Below are positions 1 to 63,422 of a stretch of 64,000 bases of DNA, piece by piece; position 1 is the stretch's first letter, and the number at the start of each line of letters is the position of its first letter. The notes below the pieces were generated by a model. It saw only the letters and a program-made list of their open reading frames with translations, was not told where the DNA came from and ran no database searches. Origin of the DNA: Sminthopsis crassicaudata (taxonomy: Eukaryota); assembly GCF_048593235.1 (NCBI RefSeq), contig NC_133620.1:270149765-270213764 (forward strand), in the 5' to 3' direction. Position numbers and translations under genes: made by a program.

Positions 1-89
1 AAATGACTAAACAATAACCACAAATTGTATACAGAACATATACTGAAGTTATAGAACTGTTATATATAGTTATAGAACTTTCCTTTCTA

Positions 90-722
90 ATAAAAAACTA
101 TTAAGAAACATTTTCCCAAAAAGGTTGTGGTTATATATATACAGATGGAGGCAATCATTATTTAAATTTTCCATTCCCTGCAAAAGCACATTTTATCAAT
201 AATTAGAGATAACCTACAAATAAACAAAACAAATTTTATTTTAAAATTATGGTGATATGGAGTAGCATTAGAAAAGAGAGGTTTGAGTATATGTTGAATT
301 ATATGTTCTATTAAAGGGATAAAATATCCTAACCTATTTTTGGAGGTTATTTAATTGAGGGGAATGGAAAAATATATTCTTCTAGCTCTGACATAGAATG
401 AATCTTAATTCCCAAAGAGAAAAAATAAAAACAAGATTTACCCATGCTCCCTTTTGATTATTTCTACAACATTCAATAGGTCAAGAACCAGTAACCTAAG
501 GTCATCTATCAGGCTTTTCTTCCCTTCATCAATTTCTCCTTTTGATTTGACATTTGCTGTACTGATATTTTTTCTAGTAGAAACTGAAGCTGCTGAAGAG
601 TACACAGATGTCTGAAAAGGAAAAATACAAATTCAGCAAAACTTTATTACAGAATAAGTAGCTTAAAAATCATGTGGAAAGCAGTAAGCTAATTGTGGAA
701 AGGGGAAGTTGTCTAAAGAAAT
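90..722. repeat. Segmental duplication block A: paralog of CD2AP intron 16/exon 16/intron 15 (parent ~33520-34340)
   Basis: Collinear same-strand matches on both sides of the exon, e.g. gataacctacaaataa, aatcattatttaaatttt, gcttaaaaatcatgtggaaagcagtaagctaa, gttgtctaaagaaat. Confidence 0.93.
442..611 (-). CDS. Diverged paralogous copy of CD2AP exon 16 (exon 16'), open frame, intact splice sites; expression unknown
   Basis: ttgtatttttccttttcag|ACATCTGTG...GAGCATGG|gtaaat; 170 nt, phase 0/2; TSVYSSAASVSTRKNISTANVKSKGEIDEGKKSLIDDLRLLVLDLLNVVEIIKREH(G); by hand alignment 27/56 aa and ~74% nt identical to 34036-34211, with one 6-nt indel. Confidence 0.6.
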
Positions 723-1680
723 GATAGGAAACTTCTGGGGGTGGAATCAAGTACAGGAAGCCCTATAGCTAAACTTTCCCAACATTTACCTCCAAACAAC
801 TTTAAAATGAAGTCTTAAATTAAATTCTGGAGTAATAAAGCCAACAAAAGAATGGGGTAAGATGTTTTTCAGCCTGATACACATTATAAGGGCAAAAAGA
901 GAGATCTGTGATGCTAGTATATAAGCTAGTCCAGAACCCATAAGGCAGCAAGACTAGCTCTGGGTATCAGAAGCAGCAGTAGCCATCAGCAGCTTTGGCA
1001 GCTCCTGGTGAGAAAGAAAATACATGGGATATCTGTTCTAGTTCCAAATACAGGACCAGTGCTGTTTGAAAACTCCATTGTCTGTATCTATTTCTGTATC
1101 ATAGTTCTAGGCCATAAAAGAATGCTTTGGATCACAAGGGAGCAGGGATCTTGTGGAACTGCATCACTTGTGGTCACAAGGGAACAGGGATACTAATGAG
1201 TAGCATTGCTTGTGTTTTGAAAGGGATCAGGGGCCCTTCCTGGGTAAGGACCAGACCACAGACCTGGAGAGCAGTATTCACACCTCTCCACAGATCATAT
1301 CACTTTAAAAGCGCTGAAACCCCCCAGAACTAGCTCTGAGAACAACAGTGTGAGAATTCCTGAACTTGGGGTAATGCCCCTGTACTCTCACCCCAGGAAC
1401 AGAGTTCAATTTTAAAGTAAGGTTCAAAGTCAAGAAATAAGACTAAAAAATTTAACCAAGAAAGCAACAATAACAACAACAAAATAACCTGACCAATAGA
1501 AATTATTATAATAACATGGAAGATGATCAAGACACAAACTCAGAAGAAGAAATTATGTCAAAACAGTTACAAGTAACATCTCTGCTTCCTCTCCCAAAAA
1601 ACGTGAATTGTACACAAGCCCAATAAGAATCCCTGGAAGAGCTAAAATTATTTTGAAAATCAAATAAAATAAATACACAT
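723..1680 (+). mobile_element. Degenerate L1 5'UTR and ORF1 start
   Basis: Resembles the marsupial L1 5' region, with an ORF1 N-terminus-like segment (atggaagatgatcaagacacaaactcagaagaaga); many stops. Confidence 0.6.
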
Positions 1681-3400
1681 TATAAAACAAACTCAATAAA
1701 TCAATCAATATTTCTATATATCACCAACAAAGTCCTACAAGAACTAGTAAAAGATGCCCCATTTAAAATAACGTAAACTTTATAAAATATTTAGGAGTAT
1801 ACTTACCAAGACTCAGGAACTACTCATGACATGAACATAATTATAAAATATTTTTATACAAATAAAGATATATTTAAATAATTAAAGAAATATTAATTGT
1901 ACAAGAGCAGGCAGAGTCAACATACTAAAAATAATTTACCTAATCTATTTATTCAATGCCATCTCAATCAAACTACCAAAAATTATTTTACTAAGCTAGA
2001 AAAAATAATAATAAAATCCATTTCAAAAATCCAAAGGCTAATAAGATCAAAGGAATTTTTAAAAATGGAAAGGAAGGAGTATTAATAGTACCAGATCTTA
2101 TATTATAGAATACTATATACTATTATATAGAATTATACTATATTATAGAATCAGAAAATTATCAGATACTAGCTAAGAAAAGTGCATCAGTAGAATGGAG
2201 TAGACATACAATATACAGTATCAAATGATTATAGTATTTGACAAGTGTAAAGATTAGCTTTTGGGAACAAGTATACATTGTTTGGCAAAAAAAAAAAAAA
2301 TTGTTGGGAAAACTGGAAAGTCTGGCAGAAATTATATATAGACCAATATCTTACACTATTTTTCAAGAGAAGGTCAAAATAGATACAGAACACCCAAATA
2401 TAAAAGGAGATATTGTAAGAAAACTAGAAGAACATGGAACATCATCTATCAGACTTATGGAGAGGAGAAGAATTTATGAATAAACAAAAGATAGAAACCA
2501 TTGTGAGATGTAAAATGGATAATTTGATTACATTAAATTAAAAAGGAGGTGTACAAATAAAACCAATGTAGCCAAAATTAGAAGGAAAGAAGAAAATGGG
2601 AAAAATCTTATATGCAATTTCTTGGACAAAAATGTATAGAATTTTGTCAAATTTATATGAGTCATTCCCCAACTGATAAATGGTAAGTTTTTTATATATA
2701 AAGAAATCAAAACTATACATAGTCATATAAAAATGCCCTAAATCATTAGTGCTTAAAGAAATGCAAGCTAAAACAACTTGGAAATACCATCTCATTACTT
2801 ATTGGATTAGCAACAATGATAGAAAGGAGAAATAACAAATGTTATAGGAAATGTGAAATAAATGGGACATAAATACACTGTTTATGAATAACAACTGTGA
2901 ATGGATGTAACTATTTTGGAGTATAATTTGAAATTATGCCCAAAGAGTAATAAAACTGTATACCCTTTGATGCAGAAATACTAGTGTTAGATCAGGGGAA
3001 AAGGAAGAGAACTTATATGATCTAAAATATTTATAGCAGCTCTCTTTGTGATAGCTACGAAATAGAAATTGAAATGATGCCCATGAATTGGAGAATGACT
3101 AAACAAATTGTGCTTCACAATTGTGATGGAATGTTCCTATATTATGAGACATAATGAACTGGTTAATTTTAGAAAAAAATGGGAAATTTTGCATGAAATA
3201 ATAAAAAAGCTAAGTAAGCAGAACTAAGAAACATTATAACTAGTAACAGCAATATTGTTTGAATAATTATTACGAACAAGTTATTCTAGGTATTATAAAC
3301 ACTCCAATCAACAACAAAAGATCTATGAGAAGAAAGATACTATCCACCTCCACAGAAAGAACTGATAAACAGAAAGAAGTAGGCATAATATTGTTTTATA
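1681..3400 (+). mobile_element. Degenerate L1 ORF2 3' half and 3'UTR
   Basis: L1 ORF2 C-terminal motifs (aaatatttaggagtatacttaccaagac; ctatttattcaatgcc; ccctttgatgcagaaatacta); frameshifted. Confidence 0.85.
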
Positions 3401-3859
3401 CATATTTATTTATTTCCAGATATATTGTAAAGACTTTATTTCTTTAAATAGAAAAAGTTGCTGGCAAGAGAATCTGGTAAAGAAAATACCAGCAAAGCAT
3501 AAAGTAAAAATACTAAAGACTTTTGACAAAATTATATAAAGAAAAAAAATCTTAACTAAATGCTATATATTTCCACTGAAAGTCTATGAAAGTTCTGTAT
3601 CTGACATATATATATGTGACTAAATTCTAACATATTTATATATGCATATATATGTGTTTCTCTATATTTGTATGCAGAAATATATGCATGTATATACATG
3701 CATGTAATATATACAAGCATATACATATAGGTATGTATGTGTATATATATAAACATATACATATAGTTATAAATCTGTGTTAAAGGGTAACATTTTCTAG
3801 TATAAGGAGGAAGAGATAGAGGAATATAGTTCAAATCTTAAAATGTAACAAATAATAAA

Positions 3860-6800
3860 TTAAATTTAAAAAATCAAATAAGAAAAAATCTAGAAAAGAA
3901 ATGAGTGAGGCAAGAAAATTATGAAAACAATTAACAGCTTGGTAAAAGCAGCACAAAAAATACTGGGGAAGAGAGACTCCTTAAAAACATTAGTAGTCCA
4001 CACCTGTCAGATTGGCTAAGATGACAGGAACAAATAACGATGAATGTTGGAGGGGATGTGGGAAAACTGGGACACTGATACATTGTTGGTGGAGTTGTGA
4101 AAGAATCCAGCCATTCTGGAGAGCAATTTGGAACTATGCCCAAAAAGTTGTCAAACTGTGCATACCCTTTGACCCAGCATTTCTGTTATTGGGATTATAT
4201 CCCAAAGAAATACTAAAGAGTGGAAAGGGACCTGTATGTGCCAAAATGTTTGTGGCAGCTCTGTTGTAGCTAGAAACTGGAAGTTGAATGGATGTCCATC
4301 AATTGGAGAATGGTTGGGTAAATTGTGGTATATGAAGGTTATGGAATATTATTGCTCTGTAAGAAATGACCAGCAGGAGGAATACAGAGAGGCTTGGAGA
4401 GACTTACATCAACTGTTGCTAAGTGAAATCGGCAGAACCAGAAGATCACTATACACTTCAACAACAATACTGTATGAGGATGTATTCTGATGGAAGTGGA
4501 AATCTTCAACATAAAGAAGATCCAACTCACTTCCAGTTGATCAATGATGGACAGAAATAATTATACCCAGAGAAGGAACACTGGGAAGCGAATGTAAATT
4601 GTTAGCACTACTGTCTATCTACCCAGGTTACTTATACCTTCGGAAGCTAATAATTAATGTGCAACAAGAAAATGGTATTTATACACATATATTGTATCTA
4701 GGTTATATTGTAACACATGTAAAATGTATGGGATTACCTGCCATCGGAGGGAGGGAGTGGAGGGAGGGAGGGGATAATTTGGAAAAATGAATAAAAAAAA
4801 ACAACATTAGTAGTCAAATGGAAAAATAAAAATAAAAGATCATTGAGGAAAATCATTCCTTAAAAATTAGAATCAGGCAAATGACAGCTAGAGATTCCAT
4901 GAAATATCAAGAAACAATGCAACAAAGTCAAAAGAATACAAAAATAAAAGACAATGTGAAATATTTCATTGGGGGAAAAAACTGATCTGAAAAACCAGGT
5001 AGAGATAATTTAAGAATGATTTGACTACTTGCAATCCATGATCAGAGAATGAACCTAGACATCATTTTTCAAGAAACTACAGAGGAAAATTGCTCTGATA
5101 ACCTAGAACCAGAGGGCAAAATAGACATTTAAAGAAATATACTGCTCACCACCTGGAAACCATTCCAAAATGAAAACTCCCAGGAATATTATAACTGAAT
5201 TTCAGAGCTCCCAGGTCAATGAGAAAATACTTCAAGAAATCAGAGAGAACAAAAAAAAAAGTTAAATACCTAAATAAAGATCAGTTAAGATCACATAGAT
5301 TTAGCCACCACCACATTAAAGGAGCAGAAGTCTTGGAATATAATATTCTGGAAGGCCAAAAGAGCTAGGATTAGAATCAAGAATAATGTACCCAGAAAAA
5401 GTAAGTATAATTGGGGAAGGGGGAGGGAAAGGAATTGGATATTAAGTGAAATAGAAAAAGTTTTGAGCATTCCTAATAAAAAAAGCAAGGATTGAATAGA
5501 AAATATTATTTTCAAATACAAAACTTATAAGAAGCATAAAGAGGCAAATTTGAAAGAGAAACATAATAGACTCAATAAGGTTAAACTTTGATATAACTTC
5601 TAAGAAATTATTATTATTAGAACAATTAGAAGGACTATACATAGATAAAAGAAAGAGGAATGGGTTGATTATTTGGGGAAAATCTTAAAAAAAAAACCCT
5701 GGATGGGCTAGAAAAGGGGGAATATAAAGAGGAAGAATGGATGAAATTATCTCACATAAAAGAGGCACAAGAATGAAGGCTTTTACAGAGGAGGGGAAAA
5801 TATTGGAAGAAGAATGAGCAATGTCTAAACCTCACATCTGAACTGTTTCAAAGAGAGAAGAATATATATGTGTACATGTATACATGTATACTCATAATTG
5901 GGTACAGAAATTTCTCTTACTCAACAGGGCAGAAAGAGGGGAAGGGAAAAAGAAAAAAAGGTGATACGATAACAGGGAAAGGAGATTGAAAGTCAATGAT
6001 AAGGAGAAAAACTGATTTTTTAGTGGGATGAAAGAAAAAGAAATGGATGAACAACAGAAAATAGGATGGAGGGAAATGCAAAGTTAGCAATCATAACAGT
6101 GACTGTAAATGGGATGAATTCACCCATAAAGAAGCAGATAGCAGAATGGATTAAAAAAGAATCCAACACTATGTAATACACAAGAAATAAAATTGAAACA
6201 GAAGGATATAAATAGTGTTAAAATAAGGTACTAGAACAGAATTCAGTATGGTTTTGCTGAAGAAAAAAAGGCAGCAGTGGAAATCATGCTGTCAAAGCAA
6301 ATGCAAAAATAGACCTAATTAAAAGAGGTAAATAGGGACATTATATCTTGCTAAAAAGTACCACAGACAAGGAAGTGATATCACTACTAAATGTATACAC
6401 CAAACAGCATATCATCCAAATCCTTGAAGAAAAGTATAATGATTTAGAGGAGGTAATTAAAAGTAAATGCTATATTCATGTGGAGCCCTCAACTTCACCC
6501 TCTCAGAGCTAGATAAATTTAACCATAAAAATAAATAGGAAAAAATTTATGATGATAAATAGAATTTTAGAAAATTTAAATATAATTAAACCTCTGGAGA
6601 AACCTGAATGTGAATAGAATATGTTTTTCTCAGCTATACATAGTACTTTCTCAAATATACTATGGCATAAAAAGCTCACCAAAAATTCAGAAAATAGAAA
6701 TATTAAATGCATTAATGCACTGAATGCAATAATGCAAAATAAAATTATATTTAATCAAGGGCCGTGCAAGCATAAATTAAAATTAATTGGAAACTAATAT

Positions 6801-7720
6801 TATCCTAAAAAATTACTATGTCAAAGAAGAAATCATATAAACAATCAATAATTTCATTAAAGAGAATAACAGAGATGAAGTAATATACCAAAATTTGAGG
6901 TATGTGGCAAAAGCAGTACTTGAGAGAAATTTATACTCTAAATGTAAATATATCAACAAAAAGCAAATAGCAGATCAATTAAACAGGCATTCAACTATAA
7001 GAAAACTTTAAAAAGAACAAATTAAAAATTTGCAATTAAACACCAAAATGGAAATAATGAAAATCAAAGGAAGTTAATAAAATTGAAAGTTTAAAAAATT
7101 TAATTAATAAAATTAGGAGCTAGCTTTATGAAAAAAAGTGGATAAACCATTGGTTATTTTGATTACAAATAGAACCAGACTTCCAGAAACCAAAATTAAA
7201 AGGACAAATGTACCACCAAATAAAGAAAAAATTAAAGCAGTTATTAGGAACTATTTTTCCCAATTATATGCCAGTAAAACTGACAATCTAAATGAAAAAT
7301 ATGGATATTTGAAAAGCAGAAATTGCATAGATTAACAGAAGGAGGAATAACATATTTAAATAATCCTATTAAAAAAAATGAAAATGAAAACCATAAATGA
7401 GCTCCGTAAGAAAAAGTCAACAGGAGTAGATAAGATTCACAAGTGGATTCTATCAAATGTGCAAGAAATAATACCTCACAATACTATATAAAGTATTTGA
7501 AATAAAGTTGAAAAAGTCCTATTAAATTCCTTTTATGACTAAATATGGTTTGGATTCTTAAATTTGGGAGAGAGCAAAAACAAAAAGAAAGCTACAGGTA
7601 AATTTCTCCTAATTAATATTCATGCAAAAAATTTATGATTATAGCATTATATCACAAAAGTCACACACTGTTACCCAAAGGGATTTGTACCAAGCGTGTG
7701 GGCTGATTTAATATAAGGAA
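3860..7720 (+). mobile_element. Old L1: ORF1, inter-ORF region, ORF2 endonuclease to RT start (interrupted by a younger L1 at 3999-4802)
   Basis: ORF1-like coiled-coil/RRM segments; endonuclease start at ~6090 (gtaaatgggatgaattcacccataaa); heavily disrupted. Confidence 0.88.
3999..4802 (+). mobile_element. Young 5'-truncated L1 with 13-bp TSD
   Basis: ORF2 C-terminus ([22 protein letters not shown]), 3'UTR and A-tail; TSD aacattagtagtc at 3986-3998 and 4803-4815. Confidence 0.95.
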
Positions 7721-7812
7721 AAAAACTATAATCAAACTAACTATATTTCAAAGCATTAATCATCAAAACAACCTAATGATGGTGGAGCAGTGGAATAGAT
7801 TAGATATACAAA

Positions 7813-8048
7813 GTTGTTGTTTGTCCTTTGTTCTCAAAGAGGACAGTGACTTCAGGGAAGTGATGGCTTGAAAGTGAATTGGATTTAAGTGAGGGAGGAT
7901 TATGCAAGGTCACTTGCCTCACTTTCCTCTCTAGAACCATCAGCATCCAATGGCCAGATATAAATCAGGAGACTGGAGATTGCATTAGATGCAATATGCA
8001 ACCTTGGTTTTTTATAAGCTAAGATATTTAACAGGTCTCAGTTTGACT
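7813..8048 (-). mobile_element. RTE-dependent marsupial SINE (WALLSI-like)
   Basis: Begins gttgttgtttgtcctttgttctcaaagagg, i.e. a (CAA)n tail on minus; family assignment from recall. Confidence 0.6.
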
Positions 8049-8869
8049 AGAATTTAAAAAATTATTTATTGTCTATTATATGCCAAGTAACATAGAAGGT
8101 ACTGAGGTTACAATGACAAAAGTAAAATTTTAGTCCTTGAACTCAAAAAGATGATAATCAATCATAGGGAAAAATAAGAGAACATATTCACAAATGTGAA
8201 ATAACTAAAAAGTAAATGAAACACATTGAAGAGGTAAAAAGATAACAATATCTGAAATGATCAGTAAAAAACTTCATGTTACTAATAAGACTAATAAGTG
8301 CAACTTGAGCTGAGCTTTAATGGCAGTTACAGAAACATCAAGTCTGGCCACACAAAAAAATACAACACACTAAATAGAGTGAAGGTAATAATACATTTTA
8401 TATTACTTTTGTCTTTACTGTATTATGTCTTTACTGTATTAACAATTAAAGCTACATAAATTATTTTCTGGTGTTTTACAACATAGGATTTACTGTAAAA
8501 CAAAGCAATCAAGAATGGTACAACATATGATTTACTGGGAAACAAAGCAATCAAGAATGGCAGGTTTTTCCTAAATCATACTATCATAAACAATTATCAA
8601 AACTTTATGAAGTAGAAAAAATTTTGGGAAGATAGCAAAGTCAGAAAACTTTCAACTCTCCAAATTTCCTCTCAAAAAAAAAAAAAAGACAGAACATGTT
8701 GTTAATGCAGTAGAAATAAATATGGGTAAATACATTAATTGTCTCTAAAGATAATTTTAAAAGGTCATCAGGAAAGATGACCTCCAGAGGCAGAGGTTTT
8801 GCCTGAGAGAAATGCAAACATCTCCAGGCCAACTCTGAAGAATCAAGAAACAAGCCTTGGGAACAGCTG

Positions 8870-10260
8870 GGTTGAGAAGGGTTTACAATATACAGTAATA
8901 AATGACATTAATCTAGCATTTGATAAACCCAAACATCAAAATTTGGAGGGCAAAAAATTCACTAGGTTGTCAAAAATTTTTGGACAACTATAAATCACTT
9001 TGGCAGAAACTAAACAAAGACTAATATCTCACCCCATTTGCCAAGTGAATAAATGATTTAGACATAAAAGGTGATTACATAAATAAAATAGGGAAGCATG
9101 GAAAATTTTGTCTCCCAGATTTATAGATAAAAGTTTATGACCAAACAAAAAATAGAAAGGATCATGAGAGGTAAAATAAATGACTTTGATTATATGCAAT
9201 TTAAACATTTTTGCACAAATAAGCCATGCAGCCAAAATTAGAGAGCAGAAAACTGAGGGAAAAATTTTTACAGCAGATTTCTCTGATAAAGGCTTTTTAA
9301 AAAAATTAAATATATAAGAAACCAAGCCAAATTTATAAAAACAAAGCATTCATCAATTTAGGGGTGGATAAAGGGCATGAACAGGCATTTTATGTAGGGG
9401 GGAAAAAGCTATCATAGTCACAAGAAAAAATGCTCTAAATCATCAATTAGAGAAATGCAAATTAAAACATCTCATTCATAGCATCTCACACTTATCAGAT
9501 CAGCCAAAATGACAGAAAAGGAAAGTGACAAGGAATATGGAAAAATAGCTACACTAAAACATTGTTGGTAGAGTTGTGATCCAGTCCAACCATTCTAGAG
9601 AAGAATTTTAAAACACACCTAAAGGGCTAAAAAAGCAAACAAGCAAACAAACTTCACTCTCTTTAACCCAGTCATATCTCTCTTAGGTGTCCCAAAAAGA
9701 TTAAAGAAAAAGGAAAAGGATGTATATGTACAAAAAATATTTATAGTAGGTCTTATTATGATAAAGAATTTGAAATTGAGGTGATCCTCATGAATTTGTG
9801 AATGGCTGAAGAAATTGTGGTATATGACTGTGATGGAACATAATTGTACTATAGAAATGATAAGCAGAATGATCTCAAAAGACTTAATAATACTTGTACA
9901 TCAGCAAAATAACTGTTTGGACATGTATACATATATTGTATTTAATTTATATTTTAACATATGTAACATGTATTGGTCAACCTGCCATCTGGAGGGGAGG
10001 GTGAGGGGAAGGAGGGGAAAAGTTGGAACAAAAGGCTTGGCAATTGTCAATGCTGTAAAATTGCCCATGCCTATATCTTGTAAATAAAAAGCTATAGTAA
10101 AAAAAAAAAAATTTAAGAATACTTGTACATAGTAACAGCACTATTGTGAGGATGAAAGAATTACTCTGATTAAGAAAATGATCTAAGATAATTCTAAAGA
10201 ACTCACAATGAAAAATACTATTCAGCTCCAGGGAAAGAACTGATGAATTCTTAATATAGA
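8870..10260 (+). mobile_element. Degenerate L1 ORF2 3' part and 3'UTR
   Basis: ctagcatttgataaacccaaa, cattgttggtagagttgtga and other L1 C-terminal motifs; many stops. Confidence 0.85.
9902..10117 (+). mobile_element. Young L1 3'-tail insertion with 13-bp TSD
   Basis: G-rich 3'UTR plus A-tail; TSD aatacttgtacat at 9889-9901 and 10118-10130. Confidence 0.92.
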
Positions 10261-10296
10261 TTGAAGCTTACTTTTTTTTTTTTCTTTCTTTCTTTT

Positions 10297-10330
<34 letters not shown>

Positions 10331-10719
10331 CTGTGTGTGTTTTCTTTAGCAACATGACTAATATGGAAATGTTTTTCATGACTTCACAGCTATAACTGAT
10401 GTGATATTGCTTGCCTTCTCAATGGATAGGGGAGATGGCTAGCTGGAGATAAGATTTTTTAAATTTTAAATTTCAATTGAAATATTAAAATTTTAATATC
10501 AATATTAAAATATTTATAATAAATTGGCATCAAAATAGTAAATATTAAAAATTAATGAATTAAATTTTTAAAGGAAAATCAATTAGAAGTTCAATGTCAA
10601 ATACATGTTGTCTTATCTAAAATAACTACTCAATAAACATAAAAAACACATGATTAACATCAAAAGGGAAACATTGTATATAATTAAAATATTTAAAGAT
10701 ATTAAAAATATAAGTATTT

Positions 10720-10957
10720 TTGCTGTTAAATCATTTTGGTCCTACCCAACCTCCATCTGAGCACATTTGAGGGAATTTTGGCAAAGATTGTGGAGTGATT
10801 TGCCAAATTATTTCCTTCTCTGACTCAGAAAACTGAAGCAAACAGATTTTGGTGATCTGTCCAAGGTCACATAGCTAGGTGTCTGATGCAGAATTTGAAT
10901 CCAGATCTTCTTGACTCTTAGTGCAGCACTCTATCCACTGCCCTATCTAACTGCCCC
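10720..10957 (-). mobile_element. Mar1/MIR-type CORE-SINE
   Basis: ttggcaaagat...gtttgccaaattatttccttctc...ggtcacatagctag...ccactgccctatctaactgcccc. Confidence 0.8.
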
Positions 10958-11119
10958 AACAATGCAAAATAGTTCAGAAAAGCTCCTGTGATCAGTGGCT
11001 ACATTAAAAGCAGCACAGTGCCCAAATTGAAAATCTTACTATAAGACTACTTCATCAGAGCGCATGTGGAATATTGTGAAGTTCTGTGCACCCAAATTTT
11101 AGGGGTCTTGGCTCTCGGT

Positions 11120-11723
11120 TAATTTTACCTTGGCTTTTTCTATTATAAGGGAAGGCTAAATAAATGGTGGTAGAGTTAGGTCTGGAAATGACTCTGGTAT
11201 AAACTCAAAAGGCATTTATAAATAATATAGAGGAAAAGAAAAATATTTCTGAAAATCTGGATAATTAATAAATTTTCTAGGATAAATTTCCTTAAAGATG
11301 TGTGTGGGATAAAATCATTTTAAATGTTATAATTCAGTATTTTAGTATTCTGAGTTATTACAATGAAAATATATTTCCAAAAATGAATAATATATATTCT
11401 GGTTAATAATAAGAACAAGCATGAATACAGTGTTTTAATGTTTGCAAAGCACTTTACAAATATCTCATTTTATCTTTACTATAATCCTGGGAATCAGGTG
11501 CTATTATCAGAGCCATTTTATAGTAAAGGAACCTGAGGCTAAGTAACTTGTCTAAAGTCACAGAGCCTAATAAGTGTCTGAGGTCATATTTGAATTTATA
11601 TCTTTCTTGCACTATATCCACTATATCACTTAATTGTCTCTTAGATTTACTAAAACATACAATAAATACAGTGGGTTTGAAAAAGAAAATAAAAGATCAT
11701 TAAAGGGATTAAAAAGCCAATTA

Positions 11724-11785
<62 letters not shown>

Positions 11786-12350
11786 TGAGTTTTGGGGGTT
11801 TTTTTGAGGAGAGAAAAAAATTATAGCATTTAAAATTATTCTACAAAAAACTTTTTAGCAATATAATTTGTGAAAATAGGATGTATTTATCAAAAATGAT
11901 CTTCAGCAGCAAAGCTTAAAGGGCATTCTTTATGTGCACTATAATTTAGTTCCTTTCTTGCTTTTTTCTTTGCAAATAATTCCCTTCTTTAATCTATTTA
12001 GATAGTTAAGTGGCTCAGTAGAATTGAATTTGGAAATACCTAAGATTCAAATATAGGTTTTGGAACTTACTAGCTGAATAATCCTGGGAACCTCTATTTT
12101 CCTCAGTTTTCTTCATTTGTAAAATAGAGATGTCAGTAAGCACTATATCAATACCGGCTATTATCACTTCCTTATAAAAATGTATTTTACAATTTCCTTG
12201 TGTTCTACATATTTGAACTTGTAAACCATGATTTAAAAAGAGTACTCATAAAATCAATGGCTGATATCTTAGTTTACTTTTAAAAGTCCATATATGCATT
12301 AAAATCAATCAAGTGAAACATGTATTAAGCACCTACTATATATGCTAGAC
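11120..12350. repeat. Segmental duplication block B: paralog of CD2AP intron 15 (parent ~35830-37400)
   Basis: Collinear matches in unique sequence and shared old MIR/L2 copies: ctttttctattataag, ctggataattaataaattttctaggataaa, gttattacaatgaaaat, tgggtttgaa, aaagggcattcttta, gttctacatatttgaacttgtaaacc, aaatcaatcaa. Confidence 0.9.
11728..11781. repeat. (TA)27 microsatellite
   Basis: Perfect TA run. Confidence 0.97.
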
Positions 12351-27781: not shown

Positions 27782-27823
27782 TCAAGAAGACAGGGCTACT
27801 TTTTTCAGCTTTTCTATTTCCAC
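27782..27823 (-). CDS. CD2AP: CD2AP terminal exon 18 equivalent, coding part (42 nt incl. TGA)
   Basis: cctttttag|GTGGAAATA...TCTTCTTGA; VEIEKLKKVALSS*, matching the CD2AP C-terminus. Exons 9-18 total 993 nt = 331 codons with no internal stop. Confidence 0.96.
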   Translation of the reverse strand: MEIEKLKKVALSS

Positions 27824-31727: not shown

Positions 31728-31791
31728 CTCTAGGTTACTTCTAATTGTCTTTTCCTCTTCCAATTCTTTTCTTAGTTTTTCCAGTTCCTTC
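31728..31791 (-). CDS. CD2AP: CD2AP exon 17 equivalent (64 nt)
   Basis: tttttag|GAAGGAACTG...CTAGAG|gtaata; (G)KELEKLRKELEEEKTIRSNLE; phase 2/0. Confidence 0.96.
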
Positions 31792-32945: not shown

Positions 32946-33689
32946 AGGACAGATTTCATTAAGAACCAAAAAATGTGAGAAATCCAAAACTAAAAACCAG
33001 AAGTTCCTAAACTTTTAAAGATTATCATATATTCATATACTTATTTTTGTCATTTTTCATTATTAGATAAAATTTTGAAATTTTGTAATAATAATACTTT
33101 TGCTACGTCAGTTAAGAAATATTTCTTACAATTATTCAACAATTATGCACTTATTGTTTGCACACCATGGTTAACTCTGTTTACAAATTAATGCTGCATA
33201 CTTTATATTACAAATGACATGTGGTTGTTTCAACGTGCTATTTTTCAACTACACAGTCCTTATTCCTTCCAGAGTGGGATACATAAAAACTGTCAGGAAA
33301 AATCAATGTTACATTTTAAGGTAGTTTCTACAATGTATACTAGAAAAGAATGCTTTCAATAATATCTTATGAAAAGTACTAAAAAACAAAATCTACATTT
33401 TTTGTAAAGTATAGGGATGGTATTATTTGAACTCCAAGGGAAAATAAAAGTTCTAAATATATAATTAACATTTATCAAATGTTATAGATAATACAATCTA
33501 AACTTTTAAATATACCTGTTTATTAAAAAAAATTATTAAGAATTATTGTCCCAAAAGGATTATAGCAATCTGCAGAAGTAGGTAATCATTGTTTAAATTT
33601 TCTACTCCCTGGAATGTAATCACAGATTCTTTGATATGGATAACCTACAAATAACCAACATAATTTCTGTTTTAAAATTCTGTGGTGAA

Positions 33690-33875
33690 TGAGAAATGTG
33701 GTAATATGTTTAGAAGGGTTGTATATATTTAACCTATATTCATTGGATGCTATCTTGGGAAGGGAAAAGTGGGGAGAGAAAAAAAATTGGAATACAAAAT
33801 CTTATATAGAAACAAATGTTAAAAATTATTTTCACATATATTTGGAAAAATAAAATGCTATTTAAAAATAAAATT
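33690..33875 (+). mobile_element. L1 3'-tail fragment in parent intron 16 (absent from the duplicate)
   Basis: tttaacctatattcattggatgctatcttgggaagggaaaagtggggag...aaaaataaaatgctattt. Confidence 0.75.
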
Positions 33876-34035
33876 CTGTTGCTATAGCATTAGAAAAATG
33901 TTTTGAGTCCTAATCTATTTTTAGAGCTTACTTACAATTAGAGGAACAAACACATCATTAGTTTTCTAATATCCCTTCTAGGTTGATATACCATGAATTA
34001 AATAATACTCCTCCAAGAGAAAAAGCAAAACTTAC

Positions 34036-34211
34036 CCATGTTCCTTTTTGATTGCTTCTACAACACACAGTAATTCAACAACTTGTGTTCTGAGGTCATC
34101 TAGTATGTTTCTCTTCCCATCATCAAATTCTCCTTTTGTTTTGGCATCTACTGAACTGAGGAAAGTTGTTCTAGGACATGAAGCTGCAGAACCTGAAGTA
34201 TACCCAGGTGC
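34036..34211 (-). CDS. CD2AP: CD2AP exon 16 equivalent (176 nt; start of C-terminal coiled coil)
   Basis: tttttcag|GCACCTGGG...GAACATGG|gtaagt; APGYTSGSAASCPRTTFLSSVDAKTKGEFDDGKRNILDDLRTQVVELLCVVEAIKKEH(G); phase 0/2. Confidence 0.96.
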
Positions 34212-35020
34212 CTGAAAAAAAAAAAAAAGAAAAGAAAAGTAACCAATATATAGGCAAAACTATATTGTACAGTAAATAGCTTAAAAGCCATGTAGAAAGC
34301 AGTATGCTAACTAAGAAAGAGGGGAGTTGTTTAAAGAAATAGGATACAGAGGAAGTTTACTCATAAATCCAAGACATTAAAAAACACTTCAAAGATGAAA
34401 AGAAGAGCAAGTAATGAATACAAAAAAAAAAAAAAAAAGTAATGAACTTTTAAGAATAAAGATTTTTTTAAAGCTCAGAATTTAATTCAAAAAACCATAT
34501 TAAGGGCTTACTATACATATTCCATTATGCTAAATGTTAGTGATTCAAAGATAAATCTCTGTTCTTCAGGGAGCTTACTTATATTTGGTTTGATAAGATA
34601 CATGCAGTGAAGTAAATGCAAAAATCACAAAGTATTTTCTAGGAGAAAGGACTAATAACAGGAGAGGATCAGGAAAGATGAATTTAAGAAGTCATACCTA
34701 AGTTTTACTTCAAAGGAAGTTGGGGATTCATAGTCATAAAAGTGAGGAGAGAGCATTCCAGACTGGAGAGAAAGGGGGGCTGGTTAGAGCCTACATAAAG
34801 GCAAGGAGAGAGGAGCTGGGATATTGTATGTGAAGAATGTTAAGATATCAATTTCACTAAAACAGAGAGTATGGGAATAGGAATAATATAAAAGAAAACA
34901 AGAAGTCAAATTATAGAAGGCAGAATGAACTGAGGCTAGGAGAGATAATAAGATTTTCTTTAAGGAATAGGGTAATTGTTTTGTTTTCTTTTAATTTTCT
35001 TTCTTTTTTTTTCTTTTTTT

Positions 35021-35696: not shown

Positions 35697-35824
35697 GGCA
35701 ATTGGAGTTAAGTGACTTGCCCAGGGTTATACAGCTAGGAAGTGTTAAGTGTCTGAGTCACATTTGAACTCAGGTTTTCCTGACTTCAGGATTAGTGCTC
35801 TATCCACTGAGCCACCTAGCTGCC
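35697..35824 (-). mobile_element. WSINE1-type SINE
   Basis: aattggagttaagtgacttgcccagg...ccactgagccacctagctgcc. Confidence 0.9.
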
Positions 35825-35950
35825 GCTAGCTAAATTGATTTTAACTTTTTCTGTTATAAGTGAAGTCAGTGAGTAGTGGTGGAGATAGATCTGGATTAAC
35901 TGTCATATAAAATCAAAAAACATCTATAAAACATTCATATAAAGGGAGAA

Positions 35951-36106
35951 CAGGCAGCTAGATGATATAGTAGATAAAGTACCAACCCTAAAGTCAAGAG
36001 GCTCTAAATTCAAATACAGATTCAAACACTTGACACTTAGTAGTTATGTGACCCTGGATAAGTCACTTAACCCATGACTGTCTCACAAATAAATGAATGA
36101 ATAATA
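35951..36106 (+). mobile_element. tRNA-derived SINE (absent from the duplicate block)
   Basis: caggcagctagatgatatagtagataaagtacc...gtgaccctggataagtcacttaaccc...aataaatgaatgaataataa. Confidence 0.85.
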
Positions 36107-37379
36107 AAGGAATATATCTCAAACACTGGACAGTTAATAATTTTTCTAAGATAAAGTTTTTTGCAAAGTACTAAAAGATAACATTATTATTGTTACAATT
36201 GAATAACTTAATATTCCAAGTTATTACAGTAAAAATATTTTCACAAATGGGAAGTTATACAAAGTTACTTCAGTAAAATGGAAGTTATATATTCTGGCTA
36301 TTAATATTAGCTAGCATTAATGTAATGCTTTCAGGTTTGCAAAGCATTTTAAAAATAGTATCTTATTTACTTCAATTCTGGGAAGAATTATTAGATCCAT
36401 TTTTACAGAAAAGGAAACAGGCAGATAGAGGCTAAGTGACTTGTACAAAGTCACAAAACTACTAAGTGTTTGAGGCTAGATTTTAACTCAGATATTAATA
36501 ACTCTAGGTCCAGTACCCCTGTATCACTTAGCTGCCTCTTAACTTATTATAATATTTAAAATAAGACAGAAAATAAATGCATTGGGTTTGAAGAACATCA
36601 CAGCTCATTAAAGGTAATAAAAATCTGATTACATAGTTTGGTTTGGTTTCATTTCGTTTTTAAAGAAAAAAAGATGATTTTATAGTACTTAAATGATTCT
36701 ACTTACAGCATTAGTAACATCATCAGTAATATCAATTGTGAAAAAATACATATATGAAAATAATTTTCAGTAATAGAGGGCAAAGGGCATCCTTTATATA
36801 TCATATAACTCAGTTCCCAGTTTTGCTTTTCTCTTTGCAAAATATTCCCTACTATACATCTAAGGGCTCAGCAAATAAAGTGCTAGAACTGGATTTGGAA
36901 AGACCTAAATTTAAATGCAGCCTCTAAAACTTTCTAGTTGAACGATGCTGAGAGTTATCACTGATCCTTTGTCTTCCTCAGTTTTCTTCATTTGTAAAAT
37001 AGGGATAGTAAAAGCACCTATCTTCTTCCTCAAGTTGTAGTGAGGATCAATTAAGATAATATCTCTAAGCATTTCCAGATATTATTATTTAGCAAAACAT
37101 TTCTCTATCAGAATTAGTAAAAATTTTATAATCTCCTTGTGGGTGGTTCTACATGTTTGAACATGTAAACCTCAATGATTTAGAGAATATACACTATTCC
37201 CAGTATCAATTAATGATTAACAATATTATATGATGAAGGCATATACATATGTAGTGTGACTAGTAATGACTACTATTCTATTTTTACAATATAATGAATA
37301 ATACTTGGTTAAGTATTTCCTTAAACCTTCAGTCACTAAATCAGTTAATTTTTATTTTAGGACAGTCAATCAAAAAAAA

Positions 37380-39259: not shown

Positions 39260-39565
39260 AGCACTCCAGGTAACTTCAATGCTAGAAGCTGCAGTTGTCA
39301 CTGTGCATGGGAAGAGGTTCCCTTAGTTGAAATCCCCTGCTGTGCTAAATTCAGATTGGGATAACCCTTACTAAAAGTAGGATACAGAAACATAAAAAAA
39401 GGGTCACTAAGGAAAATGAAATGGAGTAAATTTCTTTAAAAGGTTATGGCTCCACCTTTTAGTCTTCAAATTCTATAATTATCCTTTTACACTGCTACTA
39501 AAGGCCAGAAATTATGACAATGTTGATCTAGCATAACAATCATCTTTTAAACAATAGCTATTTAC

Positions 39566-39649
39566 CTTTTTAATTTCAGTTGTCTTTAATTTGGCACCTT
39601 CTTCCTCACCTTTCTGAAACTTCAAGGTTTTTTCTGGACTTTGAATTGG
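39566..39649 (-). CDS. CD2AP: CD2AP exon 15 equivalent (84 nt)
   Basis: ttctgtag|CCAATTCAA...AAAAAG|gtaaat; PIQSPEKTLKFQKGEEEGAKLKTTEIKK; phase 0/0; no other in-frame GT before the next in-frame stop. Confidence 0.9.
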
Positions 39650-44336: not shown

Positions 44337-44464
44337 NNNNNNNNNNNNNNNNNNNNNNNNNNNNNNNNNNNNNNNNNNNNNNNNNNNNNNNNNNNNNNNN
44401 NNNNNNNNNNNNNNNNNNNNNNNNNNNNNNNNNNNNNNNNNNNNNNNNNNNNNNNNNNNNNNNN
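44337..44464. other. Assembly gap (128 N)
   Basis: Run of n. Confidence 1.
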
Positions 44465-54819: not shown

Positions 54820-55163
54820 TTTTTTTAATTTTATTTATAAATTTTTTGACATTATATATGCATGAGTAATTTTTAAAATAACATTATTCCTTGTATTCAT
54901 TTTTCCAAATTATACCCTCCCTCCCTCTACTCCCTCCCCTAGATGACAGGCAATCCCATACATTTTACATGTGTTACAATATAACCTAGATACAATATAT
55001 GTGTGTAAATACCATTTTTTTGTTGCACATTAAGTATTAGATTCCGAAGGTATAAGTAACCTGGGTAGATAGACAGTAGTGCTAACAATTTACATTCACT
55101 TCCCAGTGTTCCTTCTCTGGGTGTAGTTGTTTCTGTCCATCATTGACCAACTGGAAGTGAGTT
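54820..55163 (-). mobile_element. Young L1 3'UTR insertion with 14-bp TSD (same family as 3999-4802)
   Basis: TSD gatcctaggtattt at 54806-54819 and 55164-55177; T-run tail on the left; rc matches ~4530-4800. Confidence 0.95.
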
Positions 55164-56395
55164 GATCCTAGGTATTTGTTAAGTGATGCTGTCTACATTG
55201 CAAGAAATATCCTAATATAGCTATTTCAGCAATAAGAGAAGAAAATCATGACAGAAAAAGGAAACTAAGTCCTGGCTTGGCTTGGCCAAAACTAGTTACC
55301 TCAAAGGACATAATCAGAGTCCAGATATACTGTATGGCCAGTAAGAAAAGGCAAATGGTACCTGGCAGTTTCAAATGGACCACAGAGGTTGAAGGTTGTC
55401 ACACTGATTGCTGAGGTCATTTCTGATGGCCTCATTTCTGAAGGCACCAGCAGTCTCATGGGCAATGATTTGGTGGGGAGGGAGGAAGGAGAGGGATGCA
55501 GGGGGCAACATTAGAAGAAACGGTAGCCAATACAAAGCGGCCAATCATAACTCTGTGGATTACTATAACCCTCAATTAAACTGATACGGCCTCCTCGCTA
55601 CTACAGTTAGGAACCACAGGGTATAAATTCCATAACTGCCTTTAATCCAAGACTAAATTGTTGGGCAGTGCCTTGCTCTTTAACAATAAGATGATGAAAT
55701 CATCTCTGCATAACTAGATAGTGGCTCCTGCAAGAAGTGGGAAATATCTGTAGAAACCTATAAAGGGGCAAAGGCACATGGGACTGGAAAGAAAGTGGGG
55801 GGTGGAATAGACAGAGGAGGAGAAGTTTCTGGCTGGTGAGCAAGAGTGGTGGTACAAAGCATATCTTGGTAATGACCCTGGCACTAATTACACATGAAAA
55901 AAAGATAATGACCTCTTGTTAACTATAATTGACCTGTAATAAGGATCACTGAGTATAAAGGAAATATCATTCTATGATCCCAATGTTTCACATGGACCAG
56001 AGAACACAGCAATAGGCAGGCAGATCTGGAATGTGACAATAATCTGAAAGATGGAGATGGACATTAAATGAATGGGAATGAGAGAGCCAAGAGCTGGAGC
56101 TGGGAAATAGATTTTTTCTTTAGTAATTAGGTTTAATAAGTAGAATAAAAGGAATATGCTAACCACTGAAAAATGAATCTAGACAGAGTATCAGTGGCTA
56201 GAAAGAATGATGAACACAAGTTGTAACCGAGGAGGTAAGTTAGCTGCCTAAGTCTTCTATCTTTTTTTACAACTTAGATCAATATTCCATTCTCTTATAC
56301 TAATTTAAGCTTTTCTAATCATAAAAATCCCTTCTCTAATTACATTAAACATTCTTGCAGTAGTAACTTTTGCCAAAAAAACAAAAAGCCCTTAC

Positions 56396-61735: not shown

Positions 61736-63317
61736 GACACTGAAAGCAAAATAGAAATTATAAAGGATGGGAAGAAAAGAGAAGGGAAAGGAAGAAGAGT
61801 TTATTAAGTGCCCATTATATGCTATACACTATGCGAAGTGTTTTGCAAATATCTCTTTTGATCTTTTCAATAACCCTAGGAAGGAGGTTTTCAAGGCCAT
61901 ATTTTAACTCAGATTTATCAGAGTCCAGGTCTAGCCCTCTGCCTAATGCCTATTATGTCACCTCATTTACAATGTAGACAAACATCTAACTCAAAAAAAA
62001 ATTTAAATTAAGGCTAGTAATAATTTGTGATCTTGTTTATGATCAAATTTTTTTCTTTCCATAATTGTAAAGAAAAACTTAAACAGCATCAAATAAAGAT
62101 AAACTATTTAAATGATGTACAGCAAAAACATGCTAGTCAGTAAGTGTGACCATTTTAAGAAACTTCCAAAATGAATCTATGAACTTATAAAACAATGAGT
62201 TGGGAGATTGCTGTAAAAAAGATTTAATCCATAGGATTTTTTTAAATGATAAGAATCATAGATTTGGGGGCCTGATAGAATCTTACATTATCTACTCCCA
62301 AATAACCTCATCTTACACATGAAGTTGAAAAAAGCCTAAATAAGGTGAATGATTTGTCATGTAGATACTAAATAGCATAGTTGGGATTCTAACTTAGCTT
62401 GCTTCTTCACTAAAATTCCAACTTTTTTGTTAATGATAAGTAGTAATTTGTCTGGTGCACAGATTCTTAACTTGGGATCTATGAACTTTTTAAATATCAT
62501 GAAAGATGTATTTCAACATCTGTGGTTTCTTTTGTAATCCTCTAGGAAAGAATCTGTCAGCTTCAAACTGCTTAAGAGAGCTATATACAAGATTTAAAAA
62601 TTTCTGACCTAATGCATTTAAATGTTTTGATTTGCAATAATGTAATTTGCATTTAACTTTTTCAGAAACTTATTTCACTTGACTTCCTTTAAGACAAGTT
62701 CAAATCCCACCTTCTCCAAGAAACCTTTTTTGATCCCCCGCATTGATGGTAATGATTTTCCTTTTTTAAATAAGATTCCCTTCCATTATTCTGTATATAT
62801 CTTGTATAGAACTATATCTATATATCATCTCTTGAAATTAGAACTAGAAAAGACAAGAATCTATTACAATTCTGTACTTTACAGAAGAAATTAAAGGAAA
62901 AAGATTTTAAAGGACCTTCCAAAGGTAACAACAAATAGAACCTGGATTTAAATAAGGGTCATTAGAGTACAAATTGAATATTTTTTTGCAATATATTCTT
63001 GTGTATACTGGCAGGGGGGGGGGAGAGATAACAGGAGGGAGTGATATCAGAGGAGGGGAGGGAGAGGCAGAGACAGAGAAAGGACTTATGATAGATAACT
63101 TTTTCAGACAAATTGGGGATATTGGTGTGAAGTACATTCAACTGATATATTTTTACAAATCTTGATTGTTTAAAATATAATTTAAACAAATATATAAACC
63201 AGTAGCTTCGTCTTATCACAATTCAAAGAAAATGTAAAACACAGTCTTGAAAAAATGGTGGCAAAATATCTGTGCTATAATTGAAAAATTATAACAAACC
63301 CAAAACACTTTACTTAC

Positions 63318-63422
63318 TGGAAAGTCCTTGTCTTGTTCATGTATCTGAATAGCAAAGTTATCTGGAAACACTCCTTCTTTACCATTGAGTTCACCTTTCC
63401 ACCATCCTACTTCTCCAGTGTC
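63318..63422 (-). CDS. CD2AP: CD2AP exon 9 equivalent (105 nt; end of third SH3 domain)
   Basis: ttttag|GACACTGGA...TTTCCA|gtaagt; translates [35 protein letters not shown], an SH3 signature (GWW-GELNG-GVFPDNF) matching CD2AP SH3-3; phase 0/0. Confidence 0.97.

Follow-up and report, generated by a model that had tools for sequence, protein, structure and literature searches.

The window, that is, the whole 64,000-nucleotide stretch of Sminthopsis crassicaudata DNA analyzed here, carries the 3′ part of CD2AP on the minus strand. The upstream CD2AP exons in the window run from the third SH3 domain (63309–63422) through exon 15, and exons 16, 17, and 18 follow (Table 1). A run of 128 N is present in a CD2AP intron at 44337–44464. 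A further copy of exon 16, denoted as exon 16′, lies on the same strand 27.2 kb past the exon 18 TGA, confirming the distance of 27 kb beyond the CD2AP stop that was reported in an earlier note on this DNA. The note described a 170-nt open exon copy with an AG acceptor, a GT donor, and phases 0 and 2, and both the sequence and its translation bear out this description. Translation of the exon yields a stop-free peptide of 56 amino acids. The reading frame is shut by a TGA 21 nt upstream of the exon and is closed again right behind the donor (GG/gtaa, the slash marking the splice border); the open frame therefore has exon-like borders. The encoded segment comprises approximately 26 Ser/Thr-rich linker residues, which lead into roughly the first 30 residues of a second coiled-coil helix.

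Table 1. CD2AP exons, splice sites, and duplicated blocks in the window (1-based positions)
Feature	Position	Strand	Details
CD2AP exon 16′	442..611	(-)	170 nt, enters in phase 0 and leaves in phase 2; open frame
Exon 16′ acceptor	612..630	(-)	14/16 bases pyrimidine, then CAG; read directly in the sequence
Exon 16′ donor GG/GTAAAT	436..441	(-)	Read directly in the sequence; parental donor GG/GTAAGT
Parental CD2AP exon 16	34036..34211	(-)	176 nt; lengths of parent and copy both 2 mod 3
CD2AP exon 17	31728..31791	(-)	64 nt, ends in phase 0; donor joined to exon 16′ in long isoforms
CD2AP exon 18, coding part	27782..27823	(-)	TGA at 27782–27784; terminal in the canonical isoform, bypassed in long ones
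CD2AP exon 15	39554..39649	(-)	Without a copy in the window
Duplicated block around exon 16′	23..722	(-)	Copy of 33455–34340: end of intron 15, exon 16, start of intron 16; 68–72% identity
Upstream end of duplicated unit	10838..12235	(-)	Copy of parental intron 15, 35698–37182

The paralogy of exons 16 and 16′ is far beyond chance. Within the window, blastn aligns the two exons and their intron flanks with 71% identity over 320 nt (E = 4e-41), and tblastn gives E = 6e-14. The homology reaches the left edge of the window. At its upstream end, the copied part of intron 15 matches the parent in four collinear pieces with 62–73% identity (63% in the main 1 kb piece). Between this part and the block around exon 16′, the copy contains about 9.5 kb of extra sequence (723–10837) without a counterpart in the 1.4 kb parental interval; several short dispersed-repeat matches occur here, and the extra sequence presumably reflects later transposon insertions. 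An inverted pair of 274-nt repeats (4523–4796 and 54891–55164) is 94% identical and is far younger than the CD2AP duplication; the two are probably copies of a recent SINE-like element. An intronic block located 30–110 nt upstream of both acceptors (640–722 in the copy and 34250–34340 in the parent, minus strand) retains about 68 of 80 positions, as compared with 63–70% elsewhere, and may represent a shared branch-point or splicing-regulatory region. Since the parental intron 16 spans 2.2 kb and only 441 nt remain in the window to the left of exon 16′, copies of exons 17 and 18 (exons 17′ and 18′) fall outside the window on that side. A location inside the window was rejected, as no match to exon 17 or 18 was found below 27 kb.

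Over the 168 aligned nucleotides, exon 16′ differs from exon 16 at 48 positions, and 25 of 56 residues are identical (27 with another gap placement). The codon comparison revealed 7 synonymous-only and 31 replacement changes, together with one 6-nt indel. The counts of the earlier note (about 45/170 nt, 27/56 residues, and 29 replacement versus 6 synonymous-only codons) were thus slightly off, while its single 6-nt indel stands. Its appeal to indel-rich flanks carries little weight, as a MAFFT alignment shows four flank gaps of 9, 6, 18, and 6 nt. The exon divergence of 29% is close to the divergence of 28–32% in the intron. When 48 random substitutions were introduced into exon 16 in 20,000 trials, 22% of the simulated mutants stayed open and 27 ± 2.5 residues remained identical on average, versus the 25–27 observed. 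By paralogue comparison alone, exon 16′ is therefore indistinguishable from neutral decay. Substitution counts and the odds of an open frame by chance were accordingly rejected as decisive evidence, because they do not separate function from decay. Two other features that had been pointed out hold up well. The hydrophobic core, in the 3-4 spacing of a long amphipathic helix, is retained in both copies, with I/L, L, V, L, V, and I at positions 3, 6, 10, 13, 17, and 20 of the helix half, as read off the alignment and counted from the S of KKSLIDD (the N of KKNILDD in the parent); exon 16′ has in addition gained hydrophobic residues at positions flanking the core (TQ to LL and A to I). The SVY start, which had been likened to that of the human exon, is indeed ancestral, as the parental exon 16 of Petaurus, Vombatus, and Dromiciops starts with ASVY.

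A phmmer search of the 56-residue peptide against 1.84 billion representative sequences returned one match (E = 5e-26), the CD2AP protein XP_074046096.1 of the bilby (Macrotis lagotis). This protein is matched at two places, and its C-terminus is built in the order of exons 16, 17, 16′, 17′, and 18′. Its C-terminal region, searched against a database clustered at 90%, retrieved long CD2AP isoforms of Petaurus, Notamacropus, and Vombatus (Ensembl/UniProt), Monodelphis, and Antechinus with 190–214 bits, versus about 95 bits for placental proteins; the cluster listing adds Sarcophilus isoforms X1–X4 and several isoforms of S. crassicaudata. Models with the 16-17-16′-17′-18′ arrangement are thus annotated by RefSeq and Ensembl in nine species of the genera Sminthopsis, Sarcophilus, Antechinus, Macrotis, Petaurus, Notamacropus, Vombatus, and Monodelphis. 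In bilby, opossum, sugar glider, and devil, the gene extends over 147–192 kb. In S. crassicaudata isoform X3 (XP_074166812.1, P0131), the 16′ segment is identical to the window peptide at 56 of 56 residues, and the other CD2AP exons in the window likewise match this protein best. The label of an orphan exon, under which 442–611 had been described, is refuted by these models, and the exons 17′ and 18′ suspected to the left of the window are present and intact in them. The 16′-containing models P0131, P0126, P0002, and P0009, which are predictions, include the SH3 families PF14604, PF00018, and PF07653, and exon 16′ thereby belongs to a protein with three SH3 domains and a proline-rich region. 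No published description of a doubled coiled coil or of a 3′ exon duplication in marsupial CD2AP was found in a literature search. The novelty is in the evolutionary reading only, as exon 16′ itself is already in the public annotation of S. crassicaudata and eight other species.

The retrieved models agree on how the copy is joined to the gene. Among 143 retrieved proteins, the module pattern occurs once in 111 and is absent in 12, and the two-module proteins are exclusively from marsupials. All 20 models with exon 16′ also contain exons 16 and 17, and all 20 show the junction of exon 17 to exon 16′ (SNLE/TS), whereas none shows a junction of exon 15 to exon 16′. Since exon 16′ follows the end of exon 17 in every case, the module is added and only the terminal exon 18 is bypassed. 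The earlier proposal of a lineage-specific alternative coiled coil consequently holds in part: the exon is a marsupial-wide and functional-looking coiled-coil exon of CD2AP, but it does not replace exon 16. Isoforms of the canonical type, with exon 18 as their last exon, are annotated beside the long ones (P0128, P0014, P0015, and P0133). The models with exon 16′ are predictions (XP_ entries and Ensembl), and their independence is incomplete, given that homology can carry a model from one annotation to another. Two observations concern individual species. In Sarcophilus harrisii, a 660-residue protein (KAM9004565.1, isoform 4-T4, P0134) ends in a 38-residue tail resembling exons 17′ and 18′ read out of frame; the tail appears to imply a junction of exon 17 to exon 17′ that skips exon 16′, and the product may be minor or aberrant. 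In Dromiciops gliroides (P0133, P0013, and P0132), no isoform is longer than X1, with its 635 residues and one module; Microbiotheria may have lost the second module, or its annotation may merely be missing there.

Orthologous exons were compared using the exon 16 and exon 16′ peptides of seven models and the window, giving 28 species pairs. In 26 of these pairs, the 16′ orthologues share only 1–5 fewer identical residues than the exon 16 orthologues, and in two the numbers are equal. The window and Monodelphis share 41/56 residues in exon 16′ and 43/57 in exon 16; the corresponding values are 44/56 and 46/58 for the window and Petaurus, and 52/57 and 54/58 for Petaurus and Vombatus. Exon 16′ is hence conserved over five marsupial orders nearly as well as its parent. 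In both exons alike, the first half, which is Ser/Thr-rich, varies among species and the helix half is nearly invariant. The eight 16′ peptides are open and 55–59 residues long with all length changes in frame, although gene models are in frame by construction. Diagnostic residues of the copy are common to species from opossum through dunnart (e.g., TQ to LL, ELLC to DLLN, and KKEH to KREH).

A maximum-likelihood tree was calculated from the helix half and exon 17/17′. The six 16′+17′ modules group in a single clade (100/99), whose stem measures 0.25 and whose tips measure 0–0.096. The placental modules form a separate clade and the marsupial parental modules a short basal comb. Within-clade branch lengths sum to approximately 0.30 in the copy and 0.16 in the parent, which suggests that the copy evolves somewhat faster than the parent yet is clearly constrained. 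In a second neutral simulation, starting from the exon in the window, at least 41 of 56 identical residues and an open frame were retained in 7.5% of the runs at 0.2 substitutions per site, in 0.16% at 0.3, and in none at 0.4 or more. Because the neutral distance between opossum and dunnart was entered as assumed values, this simulation is only supportive, and suggestive at most for a distance of 0.2; the parallel with exon 16 over all pairs is a stronger argument than a simulation for a single pair. The single 16′+17′ clade, the near-parental conservation, and the in-frame lengths together point to one duplication before the crown marsupials, followed by purifying selection. We read the sequence comparison as a burst of change in the copy after this duplication and subsequent stasis. 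The caveat that relaxed or positive selection, or chance survival, might explain the excess of replacements was justified for the window taken alone, and it is resolved by the relatives, in which most differences trace to the stem before the radiation and little change has followed.

Assembled transcripts were also searched. No protein with exon 16′ was found among the Logan assembled runs: none was present at 31–98 residues, only single-module or decayed proteins were retrieved at 99–315 residues, and only annotated models at 315–1000 residues. The Trinity CD2AP transcript of Antechinus stuartii encodes 641 (635) residues (PMC9631953). Its length is canonical, and the long form may therefore be minor. 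A 161-residue Logan protein from a 1147-nt contig (P0121) was rejected as a transcript of exon 16′, since it is decayed, frameshifted, and of the canonical 16-17-18 type without exon 16′. Its nearest relatives are diprotodont sequences, and it probably represents a retrocopy or processed pseudogene, or the transcript of one.

AlphaFold2 (AF2) was run on an alignment of C-termini from six long isoforms, headed by the Antechinus sequence. In the prediction, residues 1–28 are disordered, and two helices span residues 30–86 (block pLDDT 83–92) and 108–169 (block pLDDT 89–96). The linker at 87–107 is of low confidence, with pLDDT below 50 over 87–103. The pTM is 0.29, and the model accordingly does not predict how the two helices are placed relative to each other. 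According to this prediction, helix 1 ends and helix 2 begins within exon 16′, which also encodes most of the linker between them. A review (PMC12135550) assigns the tetramer interface of recombinant CD2AP to the coiled coil, a role known for the placental protein. We infer that a second helix may alter the stoichiometry or valency of the adaptor, either by folding back as a hairpin or by entering a second oligomer. As a tentative extension of this idea, the second coiled coil may alter CD2AP assembly in marsupials, either through an intramolecular helix hairpin, by which two rather than four chains would build the core bundle, or with each chain bridging two oligomers, and the ratio of long to canonical isoforms might act as a regulated valency switch in podocytes or immune cells; we regard this extension as possible and rather doubtful.

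Considering these results together, we find it very probable that 442–611 represents a genuine coding exon, exon 16′ of CD2AP, kept by purifying selection. A tandem duplication would have copied the 3′ module of the gene, comprising part of intron 15 and exons 16, 17, and 18, before the last common ancestor of living marsupials, and the copy would have gained its diagnostic substitutions early and changed little since. Exons 18 and 16′ both begin in phase 0. As the end of exon 17 and the start of exon 16′ likewise share phase 0, a long isoform can arise by bypassing exon 18. In the long isoforms, the exon 17 donor would skip exon 18 with its stop codon, splice over about 31 kb to exon 16′, and continue from there to exons 17′ and 18′ to the left of the window. 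The product would have a second coiled-coil helix, set apart from the first by a disordered linker, and it would coexist with the canonical isoform ending at exon 18.

The window by itself leaves room for a different reading, in which exon 16′ is a decaying relic of the duplication that keeps its frame and splice sites by chance, and in which the long models are read-through artefacts of annotation. Such a relic would fit the 22% of simulated mutants that stay open and the expected 27 ± 2.5 identical residues beside the 25–27 seen, the similar divergence of exon (29%) and intron (28–32%), and the absence of exon 16′ from the assembled transcript fragments found. It is at odds with the orthologues, which in five marsupial orders keep the frame, shift in length by multiples of three, and come close to exon 16 in conservation, their helix half being almost invariant. 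The copy-specific residues common to opossum and dunnart, and the same junction from two annotation pipelines in nine species, likewise speak against it. Chance survival is thus already strongly disfavored, and we consider it highly improbable.

A coding role could also take another form, if exons 16′–18′ replaced exons 16–18. Exon 15 would then be spliced to exon 16′, yielding one coiled coil with altered specificity. The phases permit this arrangement, as exon 15 ends and exon 16′ begins in phase 0, and the copy has a full set of its own (16′, 17′, and 18′). The junctions among the 20 models, however, all join exon 17 to exon 16′ and none joins exon 15; such a replacement is improbable, although a minor isoform of this kind could still exist. 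It is less probable again that exons 16′–18′ are included mainly when transcripts read past the exon 18 polyadenylation site at a low level, or in aberrant products, so that their splicing is regulatory or non-productive and confers no distinct protein function. The frameshifted tail of P0134 fits a junction of exon 17 to exon 17′ of this sort, and the A. stuartii transcript is canonical in length, but an unused product would not be expected to stay under purifying selection on the amino acids of exons 16′, 17′, and 18′ throughout the marsupial radiation. Hence, an added coding module remains our preferred reading. We regard exon 16′ not as a pseudo-exon or an orphan but as a real, conserved, and marsupial-wide variant of a well-known adaptor.

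CD2AP serves as a scaffold both in the slit diaphragm of the kidney and in the immune synapse; it is also a risk gene for Alzheimer's disease, and its oligomeric state is set by the coiled coil. A doubled coiled coil kept by an entire mammalian clade through the marsupial radiation would constitute a natural experiment on the valency of this adaptor. When the marsupial long isoform is compared with the canonical placental proteins (cheetah P0024 and rat P0035), its helix 2 proves fully homologous to exons 16–18 with the a/d core kept, and exon 17 of rat CD2AP is identical to exon 17′ of Macrotis. Placental CD2AP has a single module, whereas the marsupial long isoform is predicted to contain two helices and a disordered linker. 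The canonical helix includes the 13 residues of exon 18, which helix 1 of the long isoform lacks. The paralogous adaptor CIN85/SH3KBP1 likewise carries a C-terminal coiled coil, which is also used for oligomerization. CIN85, however, is encoded by a gene of its own, the product of a whole-gene duplication, while in marsupial CD2AP the coiled-coil exons alone were duplicated in tandem within one gene. Tandem exon duplication, including that of mutually exclusive pairs, is a general route to new protein segments, and CD2AP shares its usual features, namely, adjacent copies of equal phase with conserved splice sites. Unlike mutually exclusive exons, of which one copy or the other is used, both CD2AP copies occur together in all 20 models, amounting to an addition. 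The locus would provide a clean example of a gene lengthened beyond its old stop codon via duplication of its terminal exons: since the last exon was duplicated together with its stop codon, use of the copy requires that a polyadenylated terminal exon be bypassed over about 31 kb.
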